Of a stretch of 64,000 nucleotides of DNA, positions 2,901 to 39,950 are shown piece after piece (the first letter of the stretch is position 1; the number at the start of each line of letters is the position of its first letter). The notes under the pieces were generated by a model. The model worked only from the letters and a program-made list of their open reading frames with translations, did not search any database and was not told the DNA's origin. The position numbers were made by a program, and so were the translations under genes. The stretch is from Phyllobates terribilis (lineage: Eukaryota), in assembly GCF_046119375.1 (NCBI RefSeq), contig NW_027362765.1:16430001-16494000 (forward strand), read 5' to 3'.

Positions 2901-5566
2901 CCCCTTAAGCCCCGAGGGTGGTTTGCACGTTAATGACCAGGCCAATTTTTACAACTCTGACCACTGTCACTTTATGAGGTAATTACTTTGGAACGCTTCA
3001 ACGGATCCCCCTGATTCTGAGACTGTTTTTTCGTGACATATTGTACTTCATGATTGTGGTAAAATTTCTTCGATATCACTTGCGCTTATTTGTGAAAAAA
3101 AAACGGAAATTTGGCGAAAATTTTGAAAATTTTGCAATTTTCAAAATTTGAATTTTTACGCCTTTAAATCCGAGAGATATGTCACACAAAAGAGTTAATA
3201 AATAACATTTCCCACATGTCTACTTTACATCAGCACAATTTTGGAACCAAAATTTTTTTTGTTAGGGAGCTATAAGGGTTAAAAGTTGACCAGCGATTTC
3301 TCATTTTTCCAACAAAATTTACAAAACCATTTTTTTAGGGACCACATCACATTTGAAGTCACTTTGAGAGGTCTTTATGACAGAAAATACCCAAAAGTGA
3401 CACCATTCTAAAAACTGCACCCCTCAAGGTGCTCAAAACCACATTCAAGAACTTTATTACCCTTCAGGTGCTTCACAGGAATTTTTTGAATGTGGAAGAA
3501 AAAAATGAACATTTAACTTTTTTCACAAAAATGTTACTTTAGACCCAATTTTTTTTATTTTCACAGGGGTAACAAGAAAAAATGGACCCCAAAATTTGTT
3601 GTGCAATTTCCCCTGGGCACGCAGATACCCAATATGTGGGGAAAAAACACTGTTTGGGCGCACGGCAGGGCTCGGAAGGGAAGGAGCGCCATTTGACTTT
3701 TTGATTGTAAAATTTGCTTGAATAATTAGCAGACTCCATGTTGTGTTTGGAGAGCCCCTGTGTGCCCAAACATTGGAGCTCCCCCACAAGTGACCCCATT
3801 TTGGAAACTAGACCCCCCAAGGCACCTATATAGATGCATAGTGAGCACTTGGAACCCCCAGGTGCTTCACAAATTGATTCGTAAAAATGAAAAAGTGTTT
3901 TTTTTTTCACTTTTTCATTTTTACGAATCAATTTGTGAAGCACCTAGGGGTTCCAAGTGCTCACTATGCATCTAGATAGGTGCCTTGGGGGTTCTAGTTT
4001 CCAAAATGGGGTCACTTGTGGGGGAGCTCCAATGTTTGGGCACACAGGGACTCTCCAAATGCAACATGGCATCCGCTGACAAATTGAATATAAAATCGGC
4101 TCAAATTGTTAGTGGACACCATGTTGCGTTTGGAGAGCCCCTGTGTGCCCACACATTGGAGCTCCCCCACAAGTGACCCCATTTTGGAAACTAGACCCCC
4201 CAAGGCACCTATCTAGATGCATGGTAAGCACTTGGAACCCCCAGGTGCTTCACAAATTGATTCATAAAAATGAAAAAGTGAAAAAAAAACACTTTTTCAT
4301 TTTTATGAATCAATTTGTGAAGCACCTGGGGGTTCCAAGTGCTCCAAGTGCTTTTTCCAGATTTTGGCAGACAGTCATGTGACGGCTTGTTTTTTGCGGG
4401 ATGAGTTGACGTTGTTATTGGTGCCATTTTCAGGCATGTGACATTTTTTGATCGCTTTCTATTCCGATTTTTGGGAGGCAGAATAAACAAAAACCAACAA
4501 TTCAGGAATTGTGTTTTTTTTGTTTTTTTTTATTCTGTTCCACGTGTGGTAAAATTGATAAGGTAGCTTTATTCTTCGGGTCAGTACATTTACAGTGGTA
4601 CCACATTTATATCGGTTTTCTATGTTTTGCACTTTTACATAATAAAAGCAATTTTATAGAAAAAATTATTTTTTAGCATAGCTTTATTCTGAGAGCTATA
4701 ACTTTTTTATTTTTCGGCTGATGGAGCTGTATGTTGGCTTGTTTTTTGCGGGACGAGATGACGTTTTCAGCGGTACCATTTTTATTTATATTTGTCTTTT
4801 TGATCGCGTGTTATTCCATTTTTTGTTTGGCGGTATGGTGATAAAGCATTGTTTTTTGCTTTGTTTTTTTTGTTTTTTTTTACCATGTTCACTGAAGGGG
4901 TTAACTAGTGGGACAGTTTTATAGGTCAAGTTGTTCCGGACGCGGCGATACCAAATATGTGTACTTTTATTGTTTTTTTTTTTTTTTTTATAATAATATT
5001 TATTGATGGGTACATTATATTTTTATTTTTGGTGGATTATTTTTTATTTTTATTTTTTTCACTTTCTGGGTGTTTTTACACTTTTTTACTCTGTCCCACT
5101 CTGGGACTTTCACTTTTTTTTCTCTGATCGCCTGCATGGCACAGGAATGCAGCACCATCCCTGTGTCATGCAGGCTGTCAGCGCTGGACGGGGAGAAGAT
5201 TGTTTGGAGATGCACTGCGCATGTCCAAACAATCTTCCTGCTGCCTGGTGACCCGGATGTTGTCATGACGACATCGGGTCGTCATGGCAACACCCGGGAA
5301 GCCTTTGCAGACAGCGCTGGAAGCCGGAAGAGGAGGAGGAGGTGACTTCGATCGCAGCATCGCGGGGGTTAATGTGCTGGGAGCAGTGCAGGGCCGCTCC
5401 CTGCATATAGTATCGGGTGTCAGCTGTGACAATCAGCTGACACCCGGCGGCGATCGCGCCCGCACAGCCTGTGTGCGCACGCGATCGCCATGACGTACTA
5501 ATATGGGTCTGGCTCTTAAGTCCCAGGGCACAGACGCGTATTAGTACGTCAGATGTTGTTAAGGGG
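2901..5566. mobile_element. Non-autonomous piggyBac-like element, TTAA TSD
   Basis: TTAA|CCCCTTAA (2897-2908) ... TTAAGGGG|TTAA (5559-5570); removing it restores the Tc1 TIR; no transposase ORF. Confidence 0.85.
3736..4343. repeat. Two long palindromes inside the piggyBac-like element (about 162-bp arms 3736-3897/3908-4069; second unit 4119-4343, right arm truncated)
   Basis: Direct arm-by-arm reverse-complement comparison; units repeat with 383-bp period. Confidence 0.9.
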
Positions 5567-6397
5567 TTAAAGATTTTTCTATATTTTCATGACTATAAAA
5601 ATTGTACATTCACACTGAAGGCATCAAAACTATAAATTAACACATGTGGAATTATATACTTAACAAAGAAGTGTGAAACAACTGAAAATATGTCTTTTCT
5701 TCTAGGTTCTTCAAAGTAGCCACCTTTTGCTTTGATGACTGCTTTGCACACTCTTGGCATTCTCTTTAAATGAAGGTGTGTCCAAACTTTTGGTCTGTAC
5801 TGTAGATGGGACTTGAGTAACACCAGTTTGCAGGAAGGGTGTAGTGATTTTACTTTTAATTACCATTAGGACGCAGACAGACTGTCATATGAATCAGAGT
5901 GTAGTGCACAGCCAGGCCAGCCGGTCAGCCAAGTGAGACAGCTGCATAGAAATACATGCAGCTGTCACACTCAGGTCAGGAGAGACGTTGGCCAAAACGT
6001 GCACTGTTCTGATCTCACTCCAATTTATTTTTTTTCAACTGTTTGACTGCGCCCCTACTTGTATATGTTTGAGTAAAAGGTGTGTGTAAATGTGTGTGCA
6101 TTAAAAAGGGTGTGGCTTTAAAAAATGGGTGTGGCTTTTCTACACACAAACACAGAACCTGTTGTTAAAAAATTAAATCCCACCCCTGGATTGTACCATA
6201 TTGTGTGTAGGGGGCAGTACTGTGGGAAAACCCCCCTAAAGTAAAATCTTAAATTTTTATTAAATATATGCATTAAAAACTGGACTAACAACATATATAC
6301 TTAAAACTAGCAAAATTACAAGCTCAATGACTTGTTGTGAATGTATATAAACAGATGTAAACAATGATGCTGCTGAATAACAAATACAGTCACTACC

Positions 6398-20599: not shown

Positions 20600-21897
20600 T
20601 GTCATAGAAAAATTTAAAAACTTTTCTTCTCCCATGTCACAGATATTAAGAATTCTCTCTCCTAAACCCCTCTTCGCTCTCACCCCTCCCTTATCCACCA
20701 TTTGTCACAAGAGAATAGATTACAATCTAAAGTGGCTCCTATGCAAACTGACACCCACAGCAGAAGTGGCTTAGATAGATGCTGGCACAAAGGGAGGTGC
20801 TACAGACCCATTTAGCAGGCGAGTGTGTTTTCCTCTGACACAGAGAAGAAGATGCAGCTCGTTAAGATCAAAGGCACTAACTAAGACAATTCCCCAGCTG
20901 CAAACTGCAGGATTTTCGGCTCCGATACGAAATATGGAATAACTAAAGTTCCATACATCCGATAATAATGGAACCTATATTTTTAGTGGCAGGGTCAGCC
21001 AAGGAACAATATGGATATTTTCCGTCGCTGTAGACCCCTACGGGGAGCGGTAATGCAAAAGTACCAGAATAACGGATCGCAACTATGCGTAGTCTCTAAA
21101 GAAAAGTAAATTTATAATGGAAAATATGGCGTCACTTGCAAGCTTCTGCGAGCAACAAGCAATGAGTTATCACAGAAGTTAGCATTTTTAATAAAAACAT
21201 GAAGGGTGAAGCCGAGCCCACATGATGTCATCCAAGGGGGTGTGTGGGCAGATCTCCCACTTCAGCATAAAAGATCCAACTGAAGGTTGATCCATATTCA
21301 TTGCCAAAGGGCTATAGATACTATAAGCAACGGATCACATTCGATAACGCTCAAATCGAATCGCGGAGCCCCTCCTCCAGCTATACTGAATCGTCTCAGA
21401 AATCTTATAGTAAGTTTCTGGTTTAATCCTTAGTATTTTGTGTAACTGCATTTGTATTGTAATTGTCCCCTTTTGTAAAATCTTGTATATTTTTCCTAAA
21501 CACTGCCTTCCTTTTGGATTAAATATAAAATTTAATAGTCTTGTTTCTTTTGCTCTGTAATCGTTCCCTCCCCCAAAGCAATATGCTACCAGAAAGCAGG
21601 CGTCCGGCCAGGCCTGTATCATAGTTCAAACGTGGTCGGTGGTGGCAGTGAATAATATTAATTGGGCTATCGTGAAGCCGGCAGTAACCATACGATGGAT
21701 TATACACATATTACACAAGTTGGAGTCTGGAGGTATGACGCCATACACTTTCTGCTCGCTTCCAATAGCTACATAGTGAGTAATCGAGATTGTGTGCTCG
21801 CGAATCCCTGCTCAATCCTGTGAAAACCGGATAGAGTGATGGGAGCGGCGAGATATTGCGTGATCTCCCTGGTCCCGACCCTGTGCGTTCCATGACA
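20600..21897 (+). mobile_element. Solo LTR, about 1.3 kb
   Basis: TGTCA...TGACA termini; near-TSD AAGTC/AGGTC; shares blocks with 51101-57296. Confidence 0.7.
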
Positions 21898-22560: not shown

Positions 22561-22587
22561 CTCAGACTGATCCGGGTGTATTATTAA

Positions 22588-22795
22588 CCCCTTTCTGATG
22601 TATGACCTAATAGTACGTCATGGTGACCTGGGCCGATTGGACCAATGACGTATTATTAGGTCATACGGCGATCGCGCCCGCACACAAGCGGTGCTAGACG
22701 ATCGCCACCGGGTGTCAGCTGATAGTCACAGCTGACACCCGGTGCTCTGTGCAGGGAGTGGTCCCGAACAGCTCCCGGCACATTAACCCCCAGGG
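22588..22795. mobile_element. Terminal fragment of the piggyBac-like family, opposite orientation to the 5566 end
   Basis: TTAA|CCCC start; similar to the reverse complement of 5360-5566. Confidence 0.75.
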
Positions 22796-23229
22796 GACGC
22801 CAAGCCTGTGCAAAACCAAGAGGATAAAACTACATTTCCCTGCAATCAGGCCTCTACTATGGTCCATACAGTTATGTATTGATTTACTTTTCTTTTTTAA
22901 CAATGAGTTTTTATTAGAAATTTTTAAAACATAACAAAGGAAAAAGGACATCAGATACATCACATACGATATTTAGTGTACAATAATGCTTCTGAGAGCA
23001 AGTAGCAAAGAAACTTTAAATGTCATGAACCTGAGGAACAGGAGAGGAAGGGTAGCAGGATATAAGCCAACCTCTCAATTGTGGAAGGGAGAAGAGGGGG
23101 GGAGTAAACCAGGGAAGGGTATATTCTCCAAAATGGATACTGTCAGGAATTATACATAGAAAAGGAACTAAGTCCAGATTCTACAAAAGCAAGAAGTGTG
23201 GAGTAATGGTAATCATGAACATAATATAC

Positions 23230-26200
23230 TCAAGAATCTTGGTTATGAAAAAATGCTTTAACTTCCGGCCATGCAGACCACCGTTGTTGGGTCTTATCTT
23301 TTTTTGAAACGTCCCATGACAGAATCATTTCATAGGAATTATATAAATCGACTCTCCACCAGATGTCATCCGTTGATGGAGCAGAGTGGGATTTCCACTT
23401 AGAGGCAAGGGCTAGTCTGGCCGCAGTTAATATAAAAGAACAGAGCCATCTATTCTTGTACGGGAGGTCGGTAATGCCTATGTTCAGTAAAGCTAATGCT
23501 GGATTCATTGGGATGTCAGTTCCAGCACAGTATGATAACATCTTATATACCTCCTTCCAAAAGCTATTTAATTTAGAGCAAGACCACCAAGAATGCAAGA
23601 GTGTGCCTGTTTCTCTACAATTTTTCCAACATAAAGGGGATGCTCCCTGGGATAGGTGAGCTATACGGTTTGGGGGTAAATACCAACGGAGTTGGATTTT
23701 TTTTTGCAATTTCTAGGTAGTTTATGCATGACGAACCTTTAATGGGCCAAGACAGAGCTAATTGCCACTGTTCATACGTGAACTAAGTGCCCAAATCTGA
23801 TTCCCATTTAACCATGTACGGGAGCTTAGCATTGTCAGAGGGAGAATTGAGATAATTATATGCTACCGAGACACCCCTGGAGAATCCCCTCTTCCCCAAG
23901 ATAAAATGTTGTATTGTGGATGGAGCCAGTCAAGACATAATTGCTGGAGAAGAGGATAAAAAACTCTTCAGTTGAATATAGGAAAAGAGAAGATTGCCGG
24001 GGAGTTGATAAATGGAAGAAAGTTCATCAAACGTTTTGATAGAACTAGCTGAAAACATAAGACTGCAAATTAGGAATGCCATGATCTTCCCAAAGATGGA
24101 ATTGGGAGAATGGGACCACCAAATCAACGCTCCTAAATGAGATATATTTCAACGGAATATGTATAATCCTTTTAAAAATCAACTCTCTCCACATTTTAAG
24201 AGCGTGTATCATTGTAGGGAGAGAACAAGATTGAGACCCCGGGATCAGAAATTCCGCTTCCAATATAAATCTAGTAGAATGAAGTTTAGTGTCCGATTTT
24301 TCCATTTGAACCCAGGAGAGATTGGACTTAGCGTCCCACCACTCTCTAAGAGAATCAATCGTGCATGCTTTATAGTAGAGGTGCATATTCGGTAGTCCAA
24401 AACCTCCCTCTCCCATTCTATAAAACAGCAAAGAGCTCTGGAATCTGTTTTTTTTGCCACCCCAAATAAAACGAAATAGTAGAGCTTGGATTTCGTCTAG
24501 TTATTTTGTATGGGAAGTGGTATACATCTTAAAAGATATAGAATTTTAGGTAAAAATGTCATTTTACATGTTTGTATACGGGCCATCCAAGAAAATTCTA
24601 AAGTGCTCAGTCTTTTGAGTTCTGGTTTGATAGAATTTAGTAATTCTGAAATATTTTTAGAGACTAAATTTTTAGAGGGGGATACTAGGTGAATTCCCAG
24701 GTAGAGAATTGAGTTTTTAGCCCACGTAAATGGCAGAATTATTTTTAAATCAGAAATTAATCTAGAGGGACAGCCAATCGGGAGGGCCATTGATTTTGTA
24801 GAGTTCAATTTGTAGAGAGATACTTCTGAGAACTGAGAGAGAATGGATAGCAGTGCTCGGAGGGAGGTTTCGGGGTGTGTTACAGAAATAATTACATCAT
24901 CTGCATACAGACCAACTGGGTGGGCTACGGATCCTATTTTTATTCCAGAAATATCTTCACAAGTACGAATCCTCTGCGCCAAGGGCTCCATTATCAATGC
25001 AAAAATTGTAGGTGACAACGGACACCCCTGGCGAGTTCCATTCGAGATGTGAAACCGTTTTGAGCTAAAGCCAGCTGCTAATACTTTCGCACTCGGGGAG
25101 GAATACAATGCCATTATATCCTTTTGTATGTGTCCAATGAACCCAAATTTAGTCAAGACTGCTTGAAGATATCCCCAGTGTACTCGATCAAACGCTTTTT
25201 CTGCGTCCAGCGAAACGAGCACACTGGGGACTTCAGATTTTTCTGCTCTATGGATCAAGTTTAGAACACGTCGAGTGGCATCTCTAGTTTGTCTCCCCGG
25301 TACAAAACCCATTTGATCCGGCGCTATCAGTTGAGGAAGGACCGAATTAATTCTTTGAGCTAGGATCTTAGAGTACAATTTAAGATCACAATTCAGTAGT
25401 GAGATAGGTCAGAAGTTCTCAGGTTTATTTGGGGGTTTGCCTGGTTTTGGAAGGGTAACTATAGTCGCTTCCAAGAATAATGGATTAATTTTACCCTTGA
25501 TTCTCCAGTCCAAAAATAATCGCTGTAAGTACGGGGATAACTGCTCCGAAAGCAGTTTATAAAATTCATTAGCAAAGCCATCTGGCCCTGGAGTGGAATT
25601 TAGAAGCTTTAATTGCACTTATTATTTCTCCAACCTGTATAGGTGAGTTCAAAGATTCAAGTTGGGATTGTGAGATTTTGGGTAAATCAATAGGTTTTAA
25701 AAATTGTTCTATATGTGGAGTCGAGGGATGTCGGATGGCATGATCCGTATTCAGATTATATAACTGAGAGTAATAGTCCGCAAATGTGTTGGCAATTTCT
25801 GTTGGGTCATAAATTTTGTCCCCATTCGGCTGAAGCAAATGGTCAATCCTCCCCTTAGCAGTCAGTTTTATCACTCTACAGGCTAATATGGCGCTTGCTC
25901 TATCCCCCAAAGCATAGTATTTTGCTTTAACACGTTTTAAATTATGCTCATAATTAAATAACAGGAGTTTCCGAAGATCATTTCTGCTTTCTAACAAAGC
26001 GCTATTAATTGCCGGAGTCTTTTGTTTCGGGTTATTTTCCAAGATTTTAATTTTATTTATGACTGATTGCACTTCGCATTCTCTGCGTTTCTTTTCTCGT
26101 GAGGCCAATTTTATACATAAACCTCTCATAAAAGCTTTTCGTGATAGCCATAAAGTCTCGTCGGAAACTTCTCCATTGTCATTAATTTCAAGAAAATGTT

Positions 26201-26988
26201 TCAGTTCCTTAGAGAGATATTCCCTATTATGAGCAGATTTTAACAGAAGTGTTCAAGCACCAAGTAAACGCAGAGGATGGAGCGCCGCCATCAGCGAGTT
26301 CTAATATAATTGGGGCATGATCGGACCAGGTTATTGAACCTATATGTGAGGATTTACATAGTGATAAAGCTGTTCTATTTACTAAGAAATAATCTGTTCG
26401 AGAAAGATATGAAAACCTAGGAGAAAAGAACGTATAGTCCCTTTCGTTGGCATGGTGGTATCTCCAAACATCATGGAGAGCTTCTTCTGCTATAATTCAT
26501 TTTAGATCCTCCCGACCCGTAGCTCGATCCGAGTCCGTGTCTAAATCTCTAGATATAGGGGCGTTGAAGTCTCCACAAATTATCAATGGTCCCTGACAAA
26601 TGGAGTGAATTTTTTTAAGAACTTTAGAGAAGAAAATTTGGGGTTTGTTATTAGGGCTATATAAGGTCACAATCGTGTATTGGGAGTTATTTAGTAGACA
26701 AGATAGGACTGTGTATCTCCCTCTGGGGTCAGTATAAAGGGACAACATGGAATATGATATGGTATGTTTTATGAGTATTGCAACACCCGCTTTTTTATGT
26801 GGAGCATTGGCTTGAATTATTGTGGGGAAGTGAATATTGGATAATCTGGATGCATCTTGGGGAAGCAAATGAGTCTCTTGTAAACAAATAACTTCGCATT
26901 TAGATGACCCTATCTCTTTCCAAAGAAGAGACCTCTTAAAAGGGGAGTTTAAACCCCTCACATTAAAAGATAAGACCTTAATACCCAT
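23230..26988 (-). pseudogene. L1-A ORF2 (APE endonuclease, RT with YADD), multiply frameshifted
   Basis: VLSFNVRGLN, CLQETH, GDFN, LDAEKAFDRV, RQGCPLSP, LYADD spread over several ORF pieces. Confidence 0.92.
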
Positions 26989-27376
26989 GGCGGTGTATCA
27001 AAATTCTCAAATATGATCAGAGGGAAAAACATTTGTACGTCAATACATATTCCTGACATGGAGAAGGATAGAACAGTGCAATTCCGAGCATTTGGAGAAT
27101 AGGGACCCAGAGGGTGAGGGTTAATTAACCAGACATAAACATATCTAACAAAAAGGTAAAATAGAACAAAAAACACACATATGGAACAAATATTCAAATG
27201 ATAGCGAACCATCTGGATATACAGTGGGGGTATTTAAGGGATACGGACACAACAAGGAAGGACAACCGAAGTCATCAGGTCCGCACACCTGTGTCCAGGC
27301 CACAGGAGGAAACAGCAATTACAGAATCGGAAAATAGAGGTGGACTCCTAGAAAAAAAAAAAACAGGTTACAGACC

Positions 27377-28354
27377 TCAACGGTTTACAGTAATCCAATC
27401 AGTTGGAATTTTTTTATATTGTTGCTCTGGGGGAAGAGGTGAGACAAACCCCTCCGGAAGAAGCTTCCATTTGCCAAGTAGTTTTTCTGCATGCCGCGGT
27501 GACAGGCAGACCACCACATCATCATCCTTAATGATTAGCAGTTTGACCGGGTGTCCCCAGCGGTAGGGAATGCCGACGTTTCTTAAAATTGCTGTGTGAG
27601 GAGCAAATTCCTTACGTTTTGCTAAGGTAGCGGCTGATAAATCTTGAAAAATAGTGATCTCTTGAAACGGAGCCGATAGATCTGGTTTATCTCTGATGCC
27701 GCGTAAAAAAATTTCTTTGATGGTAAAAAAGTGAATCCTTGCTAGAGTATCTCTAGGCAGTGAGGGATTTACATGTTTAGGTTTGGGAACCCTGTGAATT
27801 CTGTCCACTACCAACTCAGAGTCAGATGGGTCTGGAAGTACAGACTGCAGCAGGTTGTGAAAAAATTGGGGCAAATCCGAATTTTTAACACTTTCTGGAA
27901 TCCCACGTAGTCTCATGTTATTCCTACGAGATCTGTCCTCTTGGTCCCCCATTATATTTCTGAGATATTCTGAGGAATCTTTTAATTCGTAGTATGCGTC
28001 AACCAGAGAATTGTGAGAGTCCGCAAAATCTACCAGTTTGTCCTCCAACCGTGAGGTACGCTCCTCCAGGTTTCTCACATCTTTTTTCAAGGCACTCACC
28101 ATTTGTTTCATGTCATCTTTTAAAGATTTACGCAGAGCGCTCAGTAACTCTTGCATAATGTTTTTAGTTAACGGAGCATCTGCAGTCCCTGGATCTTCTC
28201 CCATAGTTGAGCTTTCACGGGAGGAGCGACCCGAAGGTGGCGAGGAGTCCCGTTGTGTCTCACTCTGAATGGAAGTAGATTGTGCTGCTCCCCGTGAAAA
28301 AAATTCAGTCAGTTTAGTAGGTGACGCTGTTTTACGAGGTCTGCCTCTGGTCAT
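27377..28354 (-). CDS. L1-A ORF1p (coiled coil plus RRM), open 325-aa frame
   Basis: MTRGRPRK...RSRRNNMRLRGIPES...DRIHRV; no internal stops. Confidence 0.85.
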   Translation of the reverse strand: MTRGRPRKTASPTKLTEFFSRGAAQSTSIQSETQRDSSPPSGRSSRESSTMGEDPGTADAPLTKNIMQELLSALRKSLKDDMKQMVSALKKDVRNLEERTSRLEDKLVDFADSHNSLVDAYYELKDSSEYLRNIMGDQEDRSRRNNMRLRGIPESVKNSDLPQFFHNLLQSVLPDPSDSELVVDRIHRVPKPKHVNPSLPRDTLARIHFFTIKEIFLRGIRDKPDLSAPFQEITIFQDLSAATLAKRKEFAPHTAILRNVGIPYRWGHPVKLLIIKDDDVVVCLSPRHAEKLLGKWKLLPEGFVSPLPPEQQYKKIPTDWITVNR

Positions 28355-29899
28355 TTTTACTTTTATTAATGGGAACAAGATATAGAGTTATTAAGCTTAT
28401 TCTCTATTTTGAAGCATTAGCTTAGCTTCACTGTTCACTTTGAATAGAAATGCGTCGTGTCGCTTTTATAGAGGTCTGTGCAGTAGGAGTCACCTCATCT
28501 TGGGATCAGCATAATGAGGTTAGATACTGGACAAAGCCATGTCACTATATATTGGGAAAAAACTGGGAGTTTTCTGTTTTTCCCAAAAGTTCCAGCAGGT
28601 GGCAGTCTTGCAGTAGGCAACACTGGTGAAGATTCACATAGCAGTAGATTGGGAATTTACACCTGGGAACTATGTTTAGACAGCTTGTTAACTCCCTGTG
28701 GTATGGCAAAATGGCGGCCGTCTTTCTTATATGGAGATGGCGGGAACTTTTGGCGCCAAAAGATGGAGAGGCTTACAGTGCCGTTCCCGGTCAGTGTCCC
28801 GCTCTGCAAGCAAGGAGCAACAGGGGAGAGGAGGTCCAGGGGGCACCAGGGTAATCTCTCCCAAGAGTGGTGATCCTGCTCCCTCACTCCGGGCACGGTG
28901 CACTTCCTCCTCCAGCACCACAAGGCAAAGCGCGGCCTCAGGCTCTCCCACCCCCACCTCCCTCAAGCGAAGGCTCCGTTCTCTATTACCCCAGAGTTCA
29001 GCGGATTGGGTAAGGAGGACCGTAGCCGCGGGGTAGAAGGAGGGGAGAGGAGGGGTAAACTCACAAAGTCTCTTCCGTGATCCGACGGTCCCGCCACTTG
29101 CCACCTTCGGAGGAGCGCTACCACACCAGCAGTTCGGCCGCCGCGGCCCACCGACAGGAGATCTCATTCCTCCTCCACCCCACGCAGGTCTCCGGGTTCG
29201 AGTTCTCAAGCAGGTCACGTTCCTCCACAGCTCCCAGGCAGCGAGATGGGTAAGCAGAGAAGTTGAAATGCAGCCTTCTCTGTGTCCACACGCCGCTTGA
29301 TTCCACTGCGTTCCAGCTTAGATAGGGCCTAGGTTTCTTACGTCCGAACCACTGGGGTCTTTACGTTTTTCCTTCTCTCCTTATCCTTTAGTCTCTTGGC
29401 TCTGTGGGCACGGGACCCCTAAGGAACTTCTCAGGCCCCAAAAAAAAGATTTCCAGTTTGGAATTGTATATATAGATATATATAGCGCATAGGAACAGGT
29501 GTCTGCACGTCCTTTCCTGCCTGTGCCCAGGACACGCCCCCCTTACTTTTCTTTTTTAAATCAAATATTTTTTCATTGTTAAAACTCTTTTTGTAACACA
29601 ACAGCGAAACAAATAAAACAACCCAACCAAAGAAGGGACCCAGTCCCTATTCTGTCCCTCTCCCCACAACACATTGCCTTTTCAAACAAAACCTTTTGAG
29701 TTAAATGTTCCACAGTTCTGTCCACAGCAAATTAACAATCTTGCAGTATGAATAGTCACAATTGTATTAAGGGGTATCTAACTCTTGCTTTGGAGCAGTT
29801 GTATACGTGCCTAAAGCAGTCCAATGTAGGATTTTGCACCTGTCAAGTAATCTATACACCAATCATAGCAGACCAAGTCGAAATCTATGTAGTTCTCTG

Positions 29900-32800
29900 G
29901 ATGCTCGGCTGGAGCCGTCAATCCATGGAGCCCATATTTTTTCAAATTTGGAGATGGCCTTCCTTTTCAAATATATACTTTTTCACAGATTTAATAACCA
30001 ATTAATCTTATTTATAAATTCCGTCACTGTGGGCGCCTGCTCTGATAACCAATGTTGGGCTATTAGTTTCCTAGCCATGTATAACATGCGTGCCACCGCT
30101 ATTTTGCCATGTTCCTCAGTGCTTAGATCTTCTATATATGCCAGTATACATACTAATGGTGAGGGATCTGAATCGACTGAGTATGTTCTATCAATGATCG
30201 TTATTACATCCCTCCAGAAGTTTTCCAGAGCAGGGCAGGTCCACATCATATGAAGCATGTTAGCCGGGGATGTTTTACATCTAGCACATAGGGAGTCTGG
30301 TCGAAGCCCTATATCGTGGAGAAATTAGGGTGTTCTATATCAGGGTTCCCCAACTCCAGTCCTCAAGGCCCACCAACAGGTCATGTTTTCAGGATTTCCT
30401 TAGTATTGCACAGGTGATAATTCCATCATCAGCACAGGCAATAGTTACATCACCTGTGCAATACTAAGGAAATCCTGAAAACATGACCTGTTGGTGGGCC
30501 TTGAGGACTGGAGTTGGGGAACCCTGTTCTATATGACTGGTGTAGCACCTGTAAGTGGGAAAATCTATGGGACTCACTCAAGAGATAACTGGGGAACTCT
30601 TTCCAGTATTTCAGACCACAGCCCCTCTTCAATAGGGCCTATCAAGCCCTCCCATTTTTCTTTTGATCTTATGGGGTGTTTAGCTAATACTAGGTCCAGC
30701 AGACCCCTATAAAGCAATGAGATTAGCCCCCCAGAATTATGTGAGCTAGCCAATCTCTGTATTACAGCATTTTGAGGAACTCCGTTACTTAGGATAAGAC
30801 TCTCTGCCTGATATGCATGTCGTAACTGAAGGTACTTATAAAATTCGGTGTTGGGCAGTCCATATTCATTTTGTATCTGTGAAAACTCCTTGAATGAATC
30901 TCCCGCTAAAACATGAGTGAATCTTTCTAGTCCTTTTAGACTCCAATTTTTAAACCCTTCCAATTTATATAGGTTAGGGAGCAATGGTGTTTCCCACAGT
31001 GATGTAAATTGTGAGATCCCTTGTATCCCCTGTAATTTCCTCACTGCCCACCAAAGTTTGTGTATTAACAGCGTAGTTGGGGTTCTACAAGAGGGTGTCT
31101 TAAATTTGTGAGCCTCCAATGCTCCATAGAGTCTGAGTGATTTAAAATGTGATTGGAGTAGAAGACATTGAGCCCCCCTCCCCCTCCAGGGTCGTCCCAC
31201 CCACGAATGTGCTGGAGCTGAGCTGCCATATAATAAACCCACGGATTTGGGACAGCAAGGCCACCCATTGTTTTATCTCTTTGCAAAGTTTCCAGTTTAA
31301 TTCTTGGAGTTTGTTTTCCCCAGATTAAGTCCCTGAACATGCTGTTTACTTTAAGGAAATAACTCTGGGGAAGCCATATTGGAGAATTATGCAATACATA
31401 TAGCAATTGTGGCATCCAGATCATCTTGACCAAGTTAGTGCGGCCCACCACTGACAGTGGCAATTTAGACCACGTGTCCAGTTTACACTTGAATCTGGCC
31501 AGTATTGGGTTGAGATTTAGTTTCTCATAGTCAGTTGCTTTAGATGTTACATTAATACCCAAATATTTAAATTCATTGACCACTTGTAAGCCTGAGTCAG
31601 TATAGTGAGGTGCATTAATGTTCCCATTATCTATTGGAAGCAGTACCAACTTAGTACAATTAATCAGCAAACCCGAAAATTTCCCAAACTTCTCGATTGT
31701 CTCCATAGCTACAGATAATGTTTTGGAGGCTTCTGCTAAAAATAGTAGTGCATCGTCAGCATAAAGCGCAATTTTCTCCTCTATATTCCCTCTGCGAAAT
31801 CCCGTTATGCCAGGGTGCATCCTGATAGCCGCAGCTAGTGGTTCAATGGCCAGTGCAAACAGTAAAGGGGACAACGGGCAGCCCTGCCGGGTGCCCCTCC
31901 CCAGTTCAAAGGCTGAAGTAAGACGCCCATTTACCCTTAATCTTGTCAATGGCCTCTCATATAGTAGCTTGATCCATGAAATAAATGCAGCACCCATACC
32001 AAATTTCTCCAAAACTACCCATAGATATTTCCATTCAACAGAGTCAAATGCTTTAGCAGCGTCTAGCGAGCAAATAACCCTGTCTCCTGCATTGTCCACT
32101 GGCAGCTGAAGATTAAGAAATAGTCTATGGATATTAACGGCTGTAGACCTAGCTGGCATAAAGCCCGATTGATCACTATGTATAACATTAGATATTATGT
32201 TATTTAACCTGGAGGCCAGAACTTTTGCTATTATTTTAATGTCCGTAGGTAGCAGGGATATAGGCCTATAGGATTCGGGAAGCAATGGATCCTTACCCGG
32301 TTTGGGTATCACTACTATAACTGCTTCTCTCATTGAGAGTGGCAGAATGCCTTCCTTGGCTGCCTCCTGGAAGGTGCACAGCAATTGAGGTAGTAATATA
32401 TCCCCAAATTTCTTGTATATTTCCATAGGGAACCCGTCCAACCCTGGTGATTTATTATTGGCCATTGAAGCTGTGGCCATTTGTAACTCCTCTAATTGCA
32501 GGGGACTATTTAAGTATTTTTTTATCTGCTTCAGAGATAGCTGGAAGATCAATCCCCTCCAAATAAGTCAGGATTCGTTCTCTGCTAAACCCTGTTTTGG
32601 TTCTGTATAAGTCCTGATAAAATTCTCTGAAAGTATTTGATATTTGATCTGGCTGATTAACCATTGCACCTTCCTTATTTTTTAAAGCGCCTATAAAGGA
32701 TGTCCCTATTTGAGCCCTTGCAATCATAGACAGTAAATGCCCTGCCTTTTCCCCTTCTTCATAAAAATGTGTTTGGGAAAATAGTCGCTTATTCTTGTCT

Positions 32801-33858
32801 TCTCCCTAATGTGTGTAGAGTATGCCTCCTGCGCCTCTTTCCAGGTCATCAGGTCCTCCTCTGTACCTGATTGGACAAATTTATTTTCCGTGAGTCTAAC
32901 CCTGTCTTGCAAGAATTCCCCAAATTGGTTAGTTTTAGTTTTGGATCTATTTATAGCTGGTATCAGGACTCCCCTCAGACAGACCTTCATAGCGTCCCAT
33001 AGTGAGTTCTGCATCACAGAGCCGTTATTTTCTATAAAATAATTTTGAAGAGCTGATGTAATCAAATTTATGTCTATGATTTGCAACCAAAAGGGATTCC
33101 CGGACCATCTAGTAAGGGTAGCTTCCAATCTAGGCAAAAGGCATAGGCTCATCATCAGGGGTGAGTGGTCCGACAGTACTCTAGGTAAATATTCCACCCT
33201 TTCCACTAAAGGGAGAATGTGTTCTGTTCCCAGTACTAAATCTATGTGGGAGAGGGTGTTATGTGATTTAGAGTAGCAGGAGAATTGTTGTGTTTTGGGA
33301 TATTTAAGACGCCATATATCAGTCAAGGATAACTCTGACAAGAGCTCACCAAACTTAGTTATGGGGGTAGCCTCTGTAGCTGTGTCTGATCTGAATCTAT
33401 CCCAGTATGGGTGTACAATATTGTTAAAATCTCCCATGCATAGCACAGGGACCCCCGGTACTTTGTCTATGAGTGACTGACGCAATTTCCTTCATAATGA
33501 TATTATTATAGGGAAGGGGAATGTAGACTGCCACTAGTAATAATTCTTTGGTGAATATTCTACAATGAATCCCAATGAATCTGCCCTCCTCATCCACCTT
33601 AGCGGATATCAATTCAAAAGGGATAGATCTATGTACTAAAATACTGACGCCCCTCGAGTAACTTGAAAAGGTAGAATGAAAACTATGGCTGATCCATGAA
33701 CGCTTTAGGGCCGCTATATTACTTTTTTCTAGATGCGTTTCCTGCAGACATACCACTGCTGGTGAATTTCCCCGTATATATTCCATGACAGCCGTCCTCT
33801 TTAAGGGGTCTCCCAACCCTCTCACGTTCCAAGAAAGGAATTTTACTTGGTTAGCCAT
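29900..33858 (-). pseudogene. L1-B ORF2
   Basis: FLSWNVRGLG, LDAAKAFDSV, RQGCPLSP, LYADD, C-terminal cysteine-rich region interrupted by a MITE. Confidence 0.9.
30341..30526. mobile_element. 186-bp hAT-type MITE
   Basis: 78-bp perfect inverted arms; 8-bp TSD TTCTATAT (30333-30340, 30527-30534). Confidence 0.93.
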
Positions 33859-35544
33859 TAGGATATAACGCATAGGGGATGGACAGGATACGTATGACAA
33901 GCGTTAACATAACTCCGGTTCCCAAATACAAGGCTATGATAATACCCCCTTTTACATACAAGATCACTGTAATCCATACAGGTGGCAGAACTGCGTAGCA
34001 CAATCTATAAACATACAACTTACAAAAACATACAAACAGAAAAATACCGATCCATCCAGAAAAACCAGATGAATGGGGATACCAGTCCAACTCACATCCG
34101 CACATGAAGCAAGCGAACAACCTACAAAAAGAGAAAAATAAACGTTTCTTGGGAGCCTGCCATTTTAGGATAATAGACAGAATATCCATTTTCCACTGGG
34201 CCGTGGGTAACTTGGTAAGAATTATGACTCCAACAGTCAATCAGATATCTTCTGATGCACATGACTTAAGTTATACGTCTTCATTAAGCGTTGTGGGTTC
34301 TGGCGAAGTAGCTGTTCATTTAGATCAAGCCAGCGGAGTGCTTCCTTGGAATTTTCAAAAAAGGAGGTCGCTCCCAGGGCGGCCACTCTGAGTTTCGCCG
34401 GCTAAAGCATGGAATATGGTATTTGTAGCTGGCGTAGCCGACGTTTCACATCCACAAATTGTGCCCTGCGTTTTGACACTTCAATGGAGTAGTCAGGGAA
34501 AAAGGACACCTTTTGGCCGTTGACGGAGATGTCCCCTTAATCACAAGCTGCTTTAAGGATGTTGTCATGGTCCTTATAGTGGAGCAGCTTCATTAGGACT
34601 GGCCGCAGCGGGGCTCCGGGTAACAGCCGAGTAGGAACTCTGTGCGCCCTTTCCATAGCAAATAGAGGGGTCAGGTGTTCTGCCCCAAACAGGGAGAGCA
34701 GCCATTTCTCAAAATACTCAGTAGGGTTATTGCGCTCGGTTTTTTCAGGGATGCCAATAACCCTTATATTATTCCGCCTGAGTCTGTTCTCCAGATCGTC
34801 AGTTTTAGTTAGCAATGCCAGGATCTGTTGGTCATGTCTGTGATAGTCACTGATAATTTGGGGCTGTTTATCCTCCAAATCACTAATTCTCCCTTCAGCT
34901 GCTGTGGTGCGATCTGTGACTTTCTGCAGCCCCTGTCTCATATAGGAAAGTTCTTCCTTAATCTCACGCATTTGATTACTAAGTGAGGACAGGACAGATC
35001 CATACTGTGCAACAGCCATGAAAATATCCTTAATTGTAGGGTCTTCTGGGTTGAGAGAGTGCTGAAGGGGTTAACCTCTGGCCGAAGCTGCAGGCTGCTA
35101 TCTGAGGTGTCAGTGTTATCTGCATTGTCACATTCTCCTGAAAGAGCAGAGAAGCATTAGCCATCTCCCTCATCTGTGTCTGCACTGTATTACTCAAGGG
35201 GGCTGCTCTGTTTGTCCTAGCATAATTAGCTAGTTTAACTGTAGCGTTCATGGAAGTAGACTTGCCTGGTGCATCTAGGGATGTGGAAAGCTCCGGCCTC
35301 TCGGCGCCATCTTGAGATTGTCTGTCTGCTCCTGCAGTCACCTCACGGAGCCTTCTGCCTGCTTTCCCAGCCATAAAGAAACTCCTCTGTTGAGCACCGA
35401 TGGTTACAGGAGCTCAGAGGGAGATGTTATCTTTGGTTTTATTACTATTTAGGGCCCAGTGGAGACTTTTACAGGCTATTGCTCCTGGAGCTGATCTGTC
35501 CTGCGACCGCTCAGCCAAGCCACGCCCCAGATTTACTTTTCTTT

Positions 35545-35599
35545 AACCTGCATGCCCAGAGTAGAGTTCTGATATTTCCCAGGGGGTGACAGATTCCCT
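35545..35599. mobile_element. End of a T2/Kolobok-like MITE that hosts both L1s (probably continues at 22800-22880)
   Basis: TGACAGATTCCCT|TTAA, i.e. TTAA-AGGG terminus on the minus strand; other end not found. Confidence 0.55.
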
Positions 35600-36009
35600 T
35601 TAATGTGGCTGCCTGTCCCATCTCCTCCTCACCCGATTCCTTCATCCGGAGCCTGTGCACAGGTGCAAGGTAGCTGCTATAAAAAGGCCACCATCACCTG
35701 GTGAGACCTGTGCTTCTGTGCGGGCAAATCGCTCCAGCATGGCCACCACTTCCATCTTCCTCATCTCCCCTGCTTAATCTGTCTTCAGAGTGACGACCGC
35801 AGTGTCATCTTGGAGCCGAGGACCAGCTTATACCACTGTCTTTCTCTGGCTTTTCCAGGTCATTTTTTCCCGCTGAGCAAAGTACCTCCACACTCAGCAA
35901 GATATCTGGCATATGTATGGCGATTTTCAGGATGATCTTCAGGTCCTACATTGGATAAATAGCTAAATGCTTGGCAGCAGATCCTCCATCTGCTTGTCCT
36001 CACATTACA

Positions 36010-38769: not shown

Positions 38770-39950
38770 TTAAAAAAGCTTCTCTCCTGTGTGACTGCTC
38801 TGGTGACTAAGCAGAGATGATTTCTTCACAAAACATTTTCCACATTCTGAACAGGAAAAAGGTTTTTGCCTTGTGTGACTTGTCTGATGTCTATCAAAAT
38901 GCGTTTTCTGGTTAAAACATTTCCCACATTCTGAACAGGAAAAAGGCTTCTTCCCTGTGTGGGTTTTCTGGTGCTGAACAAAATATGATTTCTGCTTAAA
39001 AGATTTTCCACATTCTGAACATGAAAAAGGCTTCTCCCCCGAGTGAATTCTCTGGTGCTTAACAAAATATGATTTCTGGTTAAAACATTTCCCACATTCT
39101 GAACATCTAAAAGGCTTCTCCCCTGTGTGAGTTCTCTGGTGCTTAACAAAATTTGATTTCTGGTTAAAACATTTCCCACATTCTGAACATGAAAAAGGCC
39201 TCTCCCCTGTGTGAGTTCTTTGATGTATAACAAGAAACCATTTCTGATTAAAACATTTCCCACATTCTGAACATCTAAAAGGCTTCTCCCCTGTGTGCGT
39301 TTTCTGGTGCTTAACAACATTTGATTTATGTGTAAAACATTTCCCACATTCTGAACATGAAAATGGCTTCTCCCCTGTGTGAGTTCTCTGGTGACTAACC
39401 AGATCAGTTTTCTGGTTAAAACATTTCCCACATTCTGAACATGAAAATGGCTTTTCCCCTGTGTGAGTTCTCTGGTGCCTAACAAAATCTGATTTCTGGT
39501 TAAAACATCTCCCACATTCTGAACAGGAAAATGGCTTCTCCCCTGTGTGAATTCTCTGGTGGTTAACAAGATTTGATTTCTGGTTAAAACATTTCCCACA
39601 CTTGGAACAAGAAAATATATTCTCCGCTGTGTGAAATTTTTGATCTTTAAGAAAAGACTTTTCGAGTGGAAAAGTATCTCCATATTCGGAAAATGAAAAT
39701 GCCTTCTTTGCTCTAGGAGATATTTGTTTTTTAATGCTGATTTCGTGCCTTTGATTTTCCTTAGTAGTCGGTAATGAATCAGAATATGGGACCGGTTTCA
39801 TAGGATCAGATGATAGATCTTTGCTGTGAAGGGATGATAGTATATCTGGAGTAATGGCATTCACTTCAATTGTATCTAGTGGGATCTCATGATTATCTGA
39901 TTTAAAAATTGAAGATGTCAGCTGTCCCTCTACTCTCCTGGTACAGTCAT
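38770..39950 (-). CDS. ZNF terminal exon: spacer, 1 decayed plus 10 intact C2H2 fingers
   Basis: CSECGKCF..H...HTGEKPF repeats; acceptor TTGGCAG at 39951. Confidence 0.97.

Follow-up and report, generated by a model that had tools for sequence, protein, structure and literature searches.

Among the closest described parallels to the locus analysed here are Tx1L/Tx2L of Xenopus and other site-specific elements of the Tx1 clade, where, as here, the host of an L1-group LINE is a DNA-transposon-like repeat and one place is occupied by more than one element. The ORF1s of the Tx1 clade have been described as RRM/zf-CCHC variants, and multiple L1 lineages coexist in frogs and fish (PMC5203782); for Xenopus tropicalis, 35 L1 sequences have been analysed (PMC7140322). 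A second parallel comes from nested insertions in human, where sense-oriented hotspots occur at A-rich stretches of resident retroelements, the two L1 nicks keep a near-constant spacing of 15–16 bp, and the apparent target-site duplication (TSD) comes out shorter by the A/T stretch that served for priming (Levy et al. 2010, PMC2836564). The consensus of the first nick is quoted in the same study as TTTT|AA. According to the snap-velcro rule, four terminal T and T-rich upstream bases prime best (PMC4014453).

The locus of Phyllobates terribilis described below lies in a stretch of 64,000 nucleotides (the window). Two L1 elements, L1-A and L1-B, are arranged there in tandem in the same orientation, both on the minus strand, within a short host sequence, and are bracketed by copies of one TSD string. 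The features are as follows.

22800–22895, no strand assigned: left host part, with the left inverted-repeat arm (~22846–22872) and a T-rich loop holding the target (reconstruction, by alignment).
22881–22895, plus strand: outer TSD copy 1, GATTTACTTTTCTTT, in which GAT is a remnant of the TSD of L1-B only and TTACTTTTCTTT is common to the TSD of L1-A.
22896–29542, minus strand: L1-A, 6647 bp, structurally full-length, decayed.
23230–26988, minus strand: L1-A ORF2 remnants (EN, RT and C-terminal part), spread over at least 4 frame segments.
27377–28378, minus strand: L1-A ORF1, 333 aa open, with coiled coil, RRM and CTD (type II, Transposase_22-like).
29543–29557, plus strand: internal TSD copy TTACTTTTCTTT (29543–29554) with TTT (29555–57), a possible 15-bp TSD of L1-A (T-run counted by eye).
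29555–35529, minus strand: L1-B, 5975 bp, structurally full-length, decayed.
30341–30526, no strand assigned: hairpin MITE nested in L1-B ORF2, with 83-nt arms, 98% complementary, and an 8-bp TSD, TTCTATAT.
35530–35544, plus strand: outer TSD copy 2, GATTTACTTTTCTTT, followed by AAC (the original CTTT/AAC nick context).
35545–35603, no strand assigned: right host part, with the right inverted-repeat arm followed by GGTGACAGATTCCCT and TTAA.

A string search of the 64-kb window found the 15-mer GATTTACTTTTCTTT as exact matches at 22881–22895 and 35530–35544, and its 12-nt subset TTACTTTTCTTT at 29543–29554, between the two L1s, in agreement with the positions given in an initial annotation of this DNA; window shuffles gave a chance expectation of 0.00 matches for the 15-mer and 0.01 for the 12-mer. 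A fourth copy of the TSD string, ATTTACTTTTCTTTA, lies at 21097–21111 on the minus strand and is unoccupied. The TSD of L1-B is 15 bp long and that of L1-A is 12 bp, or 15 bp if the T-run is counted. Reading of the junction sequences bore out that both tails consist of about 3 A and that the target lies 55 bp inside a T2/Kolobok-like end, this being the distance from the B nick to the AGGGA/TTAA terminus (35599/35600–35603).

The nick contexts are CTTT/AAC and T6/AA. The 3′ junction of L1-A reads C-T6-AA at 22892–22900 and that of L1-B reads C-T6-AA at 29551–29559, and the empty-site context is C-T3-AAC at 35541–35547. Because the two 3′ junctions have a 17-nt string in common (TTACTTTTCTTTTTTAA, starting at 22884 and 29543), the position of the second nick is ambiguous by 0–3 nt. 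The TTT at 29555–57 is the complement of the 3-A tail of L1-B, and the TTT at 22896–22898 is either the 3-A tail of L1-A or part of a 15-bp TSD. The two elements had been described as using exactly the same nick, which these junctions do not bear out: a nick by L1-A at TTTTTT/AA, on the edge of the 3-A tail of L1-B and 3 nt from the B nick, fits them just as well. That reading gives L1-A a 15-bp duplication, equal in length to that of L1-B. We infer that the apparent 12-bp TSD and 3-A tail of L1-A are a 15-bp TSD whose tail has merged into the T-run.

The order of the two insertions, on the pattern of the TSD copies, is B first, then A, since both outer copies retain the GAT of the 15-mer, which the middle copy lacks; the sequential scheme of the initial annotation thus stands. 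The reverse order was rejected, as it needs a 1/64 coincidence for GAT and four extra bases before the conserved GGGGCGTG start of L1-B. A single event, in which a B–A composite moved as a unit by read-through or template switch, or an artefact in which two haplotypes were joined in the assembly, is extremely unlikely. One composite insertion would indeed leave identical outer 15-bp TSDs, as found here, but a composite or template switch leaves unexplained the third, internal TSD copy of 12–15 nt lying exactly between the elements, and a haplotype mis-join would normally duplicate more flanking sequence than 12 nt.

L1-A and L1-B are indeed two different elements: no blastn similarity was found between them, and tblastx gave 26–44% amino-acid identity. 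The 3′ end of L1-A is AATAAAAACTCATTGTT plus A's and its 5′ end GGGGGGCGTGTCC; the corresponding ends of L1-B are TATTTGATTT plus A's and TGGGGCGTGGCTTGG. Both carry the 5′ start GGGGCGTG of the lineage. The ORF2 of L1-A aligns to residues 1–1250, and that of L1-B to residues 7–1248, of the 1251-aa ORF2 of an intact L1 from another frog. The ORF1 of L1-A aligns to that relative too, and the ORF1 of L1-B matches its ORF1 with 25% identity over 192 aa (E = 1.6e-13). From these ORF1/ORF2 alignments and the GGGGCGTG start on both, the elements are structurally full-length. The earlier description of them as full-length holds in this structural sense, although both are broken by stops and frameshifts: ORF2 of L1-A has no fewer than 11 in-frame stops and changes frame at least 3 times, ORF2 of L1-B has at least 7 stops as well as frame changes, and ORF1 of L1-B has 2 stops. 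The hairpin MITE at 30341–30526 is, by its arms and TSD, a young, hAT-like element that landed after L1-B and is separate from the L1.

Pfam domains of the APE-type endonuclease (PF03372) and of the reverse transcriptase (PF00078) were detected in L1-A (E = 3e-14 and 2e-30, respectively) and in L1-B (E = 7e-10 and 9e-39). In the solved-structure comparison, which took in the EN of A, the EN of B and the RT of B, human L1 EN/ORF2p was the best match for both endonucleases (E = 2.5e-23 for A, 9e-12 for B), and the RT of L1-B matched human ORF2p 8C8J with E = 5.6e-86 as compared to 1.8e-23 for R2. The ORF1 of L1-A matched human L1 ORF1p 2YKP over residues 99–290 (E = 1.8e-12); its match to PF02994 fell below the cut-off of that family, and zf-CCHC was absent from the Pfam scan. 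No PDB match was found for a 160-aa piece of L1-B ORF1. Since the ORF1 of A matches human L1 ORF1p and the tested EN and RT pieces match human L1 ORF2p best, A and B are, on these protein comparisons, L1 proper, as the term canonical L1s in the initial annotation had implied. The further traits point the same way: an APE endonuclease, an L1-like RT, an A-ended 3′ terminus, a TSD of ~15 bp and a TTTT/AA-like site were all found, with a type II ORF1p on A; for B, the 25% match to the ORF1 of the intact relative is indirect evidence of such an ORF1p. The Tx1-style ORF1 (RRM/zf-CCHC variants) came out against, the ORF1 of A being of the Transposase_22 type. A protein-atlas search for Tx1 versus L1 placement gave generic RT cluster names as its sole output. 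The locus differs from Tx1L/Tx2L in its type II ORF1 on A, and also in that the target is a generic TTTT/AA-like sequence and that the targets of related copies are varied.

As in other frogs and fish with coexisting L1 lineages, two lineages with less than 45% ORF2 identity, both short-tailed, are found here in one frog genome. Unlike those, the lineages A and B lack close relatives in the proteins searched, save one: the only close protein match of the L1-B RT piece is a 93% fragment within a Phyllobates terribilis gene model. The closest proteins found for L1-A have 53% identity (RT piece) and 45% (ORF1).

The host sequence was reconstructed as a 155-bp element by joining 22800–22895 to 35545–35603. 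Read on the minus strand, its right end is TTAA-AGGGAATCTGTCACC and is T2/Kolobok-like. Like the T2 MITEs/Kolobok of Xenopus, which are recognised by TTAA plus an AGGRR motif (PMC6004289), the host has TTAA followed by AGGGA (fitting AGGRR), is short and contains an internal inverted repeat; it differs from them in lacking a matching left terminus and in occurring only once in the 64 kb. The T2 hallmarks were found at the right end only (TTAA 35600–35603, AGGGA). With up to 3 mismatches allowed, the 19-nt host end had no partner, a left TIR was not found, and TTAAAGGRR does not occur on the plus strand of the whole window. The assignment to a TTAA-type MITE has support at the right end only, and the further claim of a high-copy MITE is not supported: neither the 64-kb window nor 92 kb of fetched loci held a second copy of the 155-bp element. 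Three candidates were discarded. The TTAA at 22783–22786 as host left end sits inside a different repeat with a copy at 5364–5570; a 1-mismatch TSD copy at 21098–21112, considered as the other arm of the host, has surroundings without similarity; and 3 metagenome-contig matches to the 19-mer, considered as host copies, are chance matches without further similarity. An Rfam scan (20–38 kb) and a tandem-repeat scan (22–36.5 kb) found nothing.

The inner inverted repeat of the host is 27 nt long and imperfect, with arms ATCAGGCCTCTACTATGGTCCATACAG and CTGCATGCCCAGAGTAGAGTTCTGAT (22/27 positions match, one gapped). It raises the possibility of a structural hotspot, in which extrusion or breathing of a T-rich hairpin loop of ~20–27 nt would expose single-stranded DNA to any L1 RNP, the tail of L1-B being irrelevant. 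As DNA, the core hairpin has a folding energy of -9.3 kcal/mol (z = -2.9 relative to shuffles), its loop takes in the entire TSD, and L1 RT priming requires a single-stranded 3′ end (PMC4014453). However, the fold z is modest, falling to -0.6 for the whole 155-nt element, this is a single locus, and the B tail alone is enough for the second insertion. We consider such a hotspot unlikely.

Searches for further copies bear on a different proposal, made in the initial annotation, namely that the L1s target the MITE as a safe haven; one or both lineages would then recognise it, by its sequence or through a bound factor, and use it as Tx1L does Tx1D. Two different full-length L1s only 0–3 nt apart, and a right flank of TTAA plus AGGGA as in T2/Kolobok MITEs, speak for this proposal. 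No same-family copies of A or B were reached by protein searches with the A RT piece, the A ORF1 and the B RT piece; a Ranitomeya imitator protein was among the matches of this search. One protein match spread over 27 contigs came down to a single transcribed locus without junctions, no usable L1 junctions were found at two further candidate loci, and a search with the 1251-aa ORF2 of the intact relative returned only that relative itself. That intact relative has a tail of 3–4 A and a TSD of 15–16 bp, and its two copies sit in A-rich targets with unlike flanks, AGAAATTAAGGGTTAT and AAGAAATAATAAATC; it is a distant lineage, with 42% ORF1 and 37–44% ORF2 identity to A. Unrelated A/T-rich flanks around other copies had been named as the observation that would overturn targeting, and these two copies supply it only indirectly. 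Against a safe haven stand also the Transposase_22-type ORF1 of A, which is that of L1 proper and not one of the Tx1-clade variants (PMC5203782), a host without a second copy in the window or the fetched loci and without an identifiable left TIR, the identical 15-mer ATTTACTTTTCTTTA left unoccupied, and a B-created site that fully explains the second insertion. Recognition of the MITE is very improbable. More broadly, that the T-rich apical loop of the T2-like element is a real preferred landing pad, whether as hotspot or safe haven, with B and A each choosing it for its own qualities and not for the improvement made by the tail of B, is quite improbable. A family-specific site preference of A or B may exist.

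Ordinary re-use of a site improved by the first insertion is a better explanation of the locus than is deliberate homing to a small transposon. At a probability of roughly 80%, we favour two independent TPRT events in which unrelated L1-proper lineages used the same T-rich spot in succession, MITE recognition not being needed. As read from the junctions, the endonuclease of L1-B nicked the plus strand at TTACTTTTCTTT/AACCTG, with the second-strand break 15 nt away, and L1-B went in at full length, ending in 3 A and flanked by the 15-bp TSD GATTTACTTTTCTTT. The TSD copy and tail of L1-B would then read TTACTTTTCTTTTTT/AAATC, a perfect TTTT/AA site whose primer is T-rich throughout. L1-A would have nicked 0–3 nt from the B nick, most economically at exactly T6/AA, and integrated full-length after a second break again 15 nt away, so that the left border of its TSD would be shifted by the same 3 nt. 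Both L1s decayed afterwards, the hAT-like MITE entering L1-B later.

The gain in site quality can be followed in the sequence. The window contains 186 TTT/AA sites, only 4 of which combine TTTT with 9 or more T among the last 10 positions; two of these 4 are the junctions described here. Graded by the snap-velcro rule, ACTTTTCTTT/AA, the site before B inserted, ranks as fair and TTTCTTTTTT/AA, the site after B inserted, ranks in the top class, and the T6/AA site fits the TTTT|AA consensus better than TTT/TT. Here, as in the snap-velcro model (PMC4014453), the target is governed by the final 10 nt leading up to the nick, with an open snap, CTTT, turned into a closed one, TTTT, with 9/10 T; the model differs in having been measured with human L1 RNPs, and it is carried to frog L1s, like the human L1 endonuclease/RT priming rules in general, by inference only. 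The nested-element hotspots of Levy et al. (PMC2836564) resemble the locus in orientation at the T-run, in nick spacing and in the shortened TSD (here 12 + 3 = 15). They differ in that they concern mainly human Alu and L1 and not two unrelated full-length frog L1 lineages, and in that the tail here is only 3 A, so that the earlier TSD supplies most of the T-rich primer. Two points count against re-use: two full-length insertions within 3 nt are still rare for any single site, and the position of the target in an inverted-repeat loop with a T2-like end could contribute to site choice.

The evidence points to a textbook consequence of TPRT, in which an insertion regenerates, and here improves, its T-rich nick site and a second element follows. 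True targeting would predict an excess of A/B junctions with AAAGAAAAGTAAATC-like TSDs or lying 55 bp inside the host element. If homing to the MITE were real, it would be a new safe-haven case outside the Tx1 group and would bear on how frog genomes of very large size cope with many active LINE lineages. The locus offers a clean worked example of the 15-bp nick spacing and of the "TSD plus tail = 15" rule in amphibian L1s, and adds full-length representatives, one each, of two undescribed dendrobatid L1 lineages that have a 5′-terminal motif in common.

The window contains exactly two copies of the 15-mer GATTTACTTTTCTTT, one at 22881-22895 and one at 35530-35544 (0.00 copies expected in shuffled windows), and its last 12 nt are found once more, at 29543-29554, between the outer two (0.01 expected). 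When the junctions are read in the sequence, these copies delimit two LINEs, L1-A and L1-B, arranged in tandem with the same orientation, both on the minus strand. With the 15-mer in two copies and its 12-nt subset between them, the head-to-tail stack with a shared target string proposed by the initial annotation is confirmed. No nucleotide similarity between the two elements was found in the DNA comparison, and at the amino-acid level they share only patches of 26-44% identity.

Features of the window and of a distantly related L1 from another frog (Logan contigs L001-L010).
35529 down to 29555, minus strand: L1-B, 5975 bp, upstream element (junction reading)
29542 down to 22896, minus strand: L1-A, 6647 bp, downstream element (junction reading)
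29531-29540 and 35519-35528, minus strand; also L003:1237-1250 and L004:203-215: GGGGCGTG(G/T)C motif
30341-30526 (region 30333-30534): hairpin MITE of 186 bp nested in ORF2 of L1-B, 8-bp target-site duplication (TSD) TTCTATAT
22584-22800, and 5364-5570 on the minus strand: ~210-bp repeat, starting TTAACCCCTT and ending ...CACATTAACCCCC, 83% identity between copies
L001:1-6487 (Logan SRR5149438), also L002, L003 and L004: relative L1, 5′ UTR of ~1.1 kb

On the minus strand the layout reads AAAGAAAAGTAAATC, L1-B, AAAGAAAAGTAA, L1-A, AAAGAAAAGTAA-ATC, as expected if the insertion of L1-B came first and made a 15-bp TSD, and L1-A then entered the TSD copy on the 3′ side of L1-B. The reverse order would require ATC to be present at the 5′ start of L1-B by chance (1 in 64), as well as four bases ahead of its conserved GGGGCGTG start. 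Because of these two unlikely requirements we retain the order B then A, as previously proposed. Insertion as one composite unit and template switching were both rejected, since neither would leave an internal TSD copy, and a mis-join in the assembly is an unlikely source of the stacked elements.

Each element encodes an endonuclease of APE type together with an RVT_1 reverse transcriptase. Among solved structures, human L1 EN/ORF2p is the best match for the endonucleases of L1-A (E = 2.5e-23) and L1-B (E = 9e-12), and human L1 ORF2p for the reverse transcriptase of L1-B (E = 5.6e-86 versus 1.8e-23 for R2). ORF1 of L1-A remains open (333 aa); its match to the trimer structure of human L1 ORF1p (E = 1.8e-12) covers the coiled-coil end, RRM and CTD, making this a type II ORF1, of L1 proper. 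In contrast, ORF1s of the Tx1 clade are described as RRM/zf-CCHC variants (PMC5203782). No close relative of L1-A was found in the protein collections searched, and the only B-like sequence there was one fragment with 93% identity, part of a gene model of Phyllobates terribilis; this hit points to a dendrobatid genome. The Logan contigs yielded an apparently intact, distant relative with ORF1 of 335 aa and ORF2 of 1251 aa; its ORF1 is identical in 11 contigs from several runs, and the element is probably active. Its ORF2 aligns with L1-A over residues 1-1250 and with L1-B over residues 7-1248, so both are structurally complete. Both are nevertheless dead: ORF2 of L1-A is broken by ≥11 in-frame stops and ≥3 frame changes, and in L1-B there are ≥7 stops in ORF2 besides 2 in ORF1. 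"Full-length" is therefore correct, whereas "intact" would be wrong. The MITE nested in L1-B, with 83-nt arms (98% complementary) and termini CAGGGTTCCCC..., is young and, by its 8-bp TSD, hAT-like.

The 5′ starts (GGGGGGCGTGTCC in L1-A, TGGGGCGTGGC in L1-B, GGGGGGCGTGGCC in the relative) all open with GGGGCGTG(G/T)C, which independently supports full length at the 5′ end. GGGGCGTGKC is absent from the window beyond the 5′ ends of L1-A and L1-B (0.13 expected). This is probably a start-site or promoter block conserved across L1 lineages with <45% ORF2 identity. L1-B and the relative also have GATCAGCTCC in common, 25-35 nt further in.

That both L1s used exactly the same nick, as initially annotated, cannot be shown, since the junctions equally allow a nick 3 nt away. 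The empty site reads ...TTACTTTTC-TTT/AAC (35541-35547), and C-TTTTTT-AA is present at both 3′ junctions (22892-22900, 29551-29559), which have a 17-nt string in common, TTACTTTTCTTTTTTAA. Once L1-B had inserted, the plus strand would read ...TTACTTTTCTTTTTT/AAATC. L1-A would then nick T6/AA, 3 nt to the right of the nick of L1-B, at the border between the 3-A tail and the body of L1-B, and a second-strand break again 15 nt away would give exactly the observed sequence. The TSD of L1-A would be TTACTTTTCTTTTTT, 15 bp as for L1-B, its left border moved by the same 3 nt, hence the absence of GAT from the middle copy. This reading agrees with human L1, where the spacing between the two nicks is nearly constant at 15-16 bp (Levy et al., PMC2836564). 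A nick at the position used by L1-B would cut TTT/TT, which fits less well the first-nick consensus TTTT/AA quoted in the same paper. In human, the T stretch that serves for priming shortens the visible TSD, and A-rich stretches of resident elements are sense-oriented hotspots (PMC2836564). A nick at T6/AA is more economical than one identical to that of L1-B.

The snap-velcro rule gives most weight to the four bases directly preceding the nick (the snap, closed when TTTT), with T's in the six ahead of them also of help (PMC4014453). By this rule the site before L1-B, ACTTTTCTTT/AA, is fair (open snap, 7/10 T), whereas the site after it, TTTCTTTTTT/AA, is excellent (closed snap, 9/10 T). The window contains 186 TTT/AA sites on both strands, 77 of them with TTTT, and only 4 of the 186 combine TTTT with ≥9 T among the 10 bases before the nick; two of these are the 3′ junctions of L1-A and L1-B. 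By these counts, the insertion of L1-B created a site that ranks among the best for L1 landing within 128 kb of strand. The other two sites lie at 39732 and 44213 on the plus strand. We infer that the human nicking and priming rules carry over to frog L1s; the relative is alike in its tails of 3-4 A, behind the 3′ end AATAAAAATTGTGTTAAA(A), its TSD of 15-16 bp (AGAAATTAAGGGTTAT; 5′ flank in L003, 3′ flank in L001) and its A-rich targets.

The right flank of the host ends, on the minus strand, in TTAA-AGGGAATCTGTCACC and at this end fits the T2/Kolobok hallmarks of a TTAA target and terminal AGGRR (PMC6004289); the nick lies 55 bp inside this end, in agreement with the distance first given. The reconstructed empty site (22800-22895 plus 35545-35603, 155 bp) contains an inner imperfect inverted repeat (22/27 positions match) with the TSD in its loop; the core hairpin has a folding energy of -9.3 kcal/mol (z = -2.9), and z is -0.6 for the full 155 nt. 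Other traits expected of a MITE are lacking. No left terminus was found: TTAAAGGRR is absent from the plus strand of the window, and the 19-nt end is without a partner at ≤3 mismatches. The TTAA at 22783 was rejected as left end, as it sits in the different, ~210-bp repeat, which abuts the host sequence and contains palindromes, at 22600-22666 and 22706-22744. Neither the window nor the 92 kb of fetched loci holds a second copy of the 155-bp element, and metagenome matches to its end were chance matches. A TTAA-type MITE end is plausible, but "high-copy" is unsupported.

Indirect evidence points against the idea that L1 lineages target this MITE-like element, possibly as a safe haven. In two copies of the related intact L1 the flanks are A-rich and unrelated, ORF1 of L1-A is not of Tx1 type, and the site made by L1-B suffices to account for the second hit. 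Furthermore, an exact 15-mer, ATTTACTTTTCTTTA, consisting of 14 nt of target plus the first base past the nick, is left unoccupied at 21097-21111 (minus strand), 1.8 kb away and in opposite orientation (BLAST E = 0.026); no MITE similarity was detected around it, and it may be a chance occurrence or a decayed relic. There is a small residual probability that the T-rich hairpin loop of the T2-like element is itself a preferred landing pad. The mechanism of these sequential insertions is probably ordinary: the second L1 used the run of T's which its predecessor had restored and extended, a phenomenon already known from mammalian nested-TE studies.
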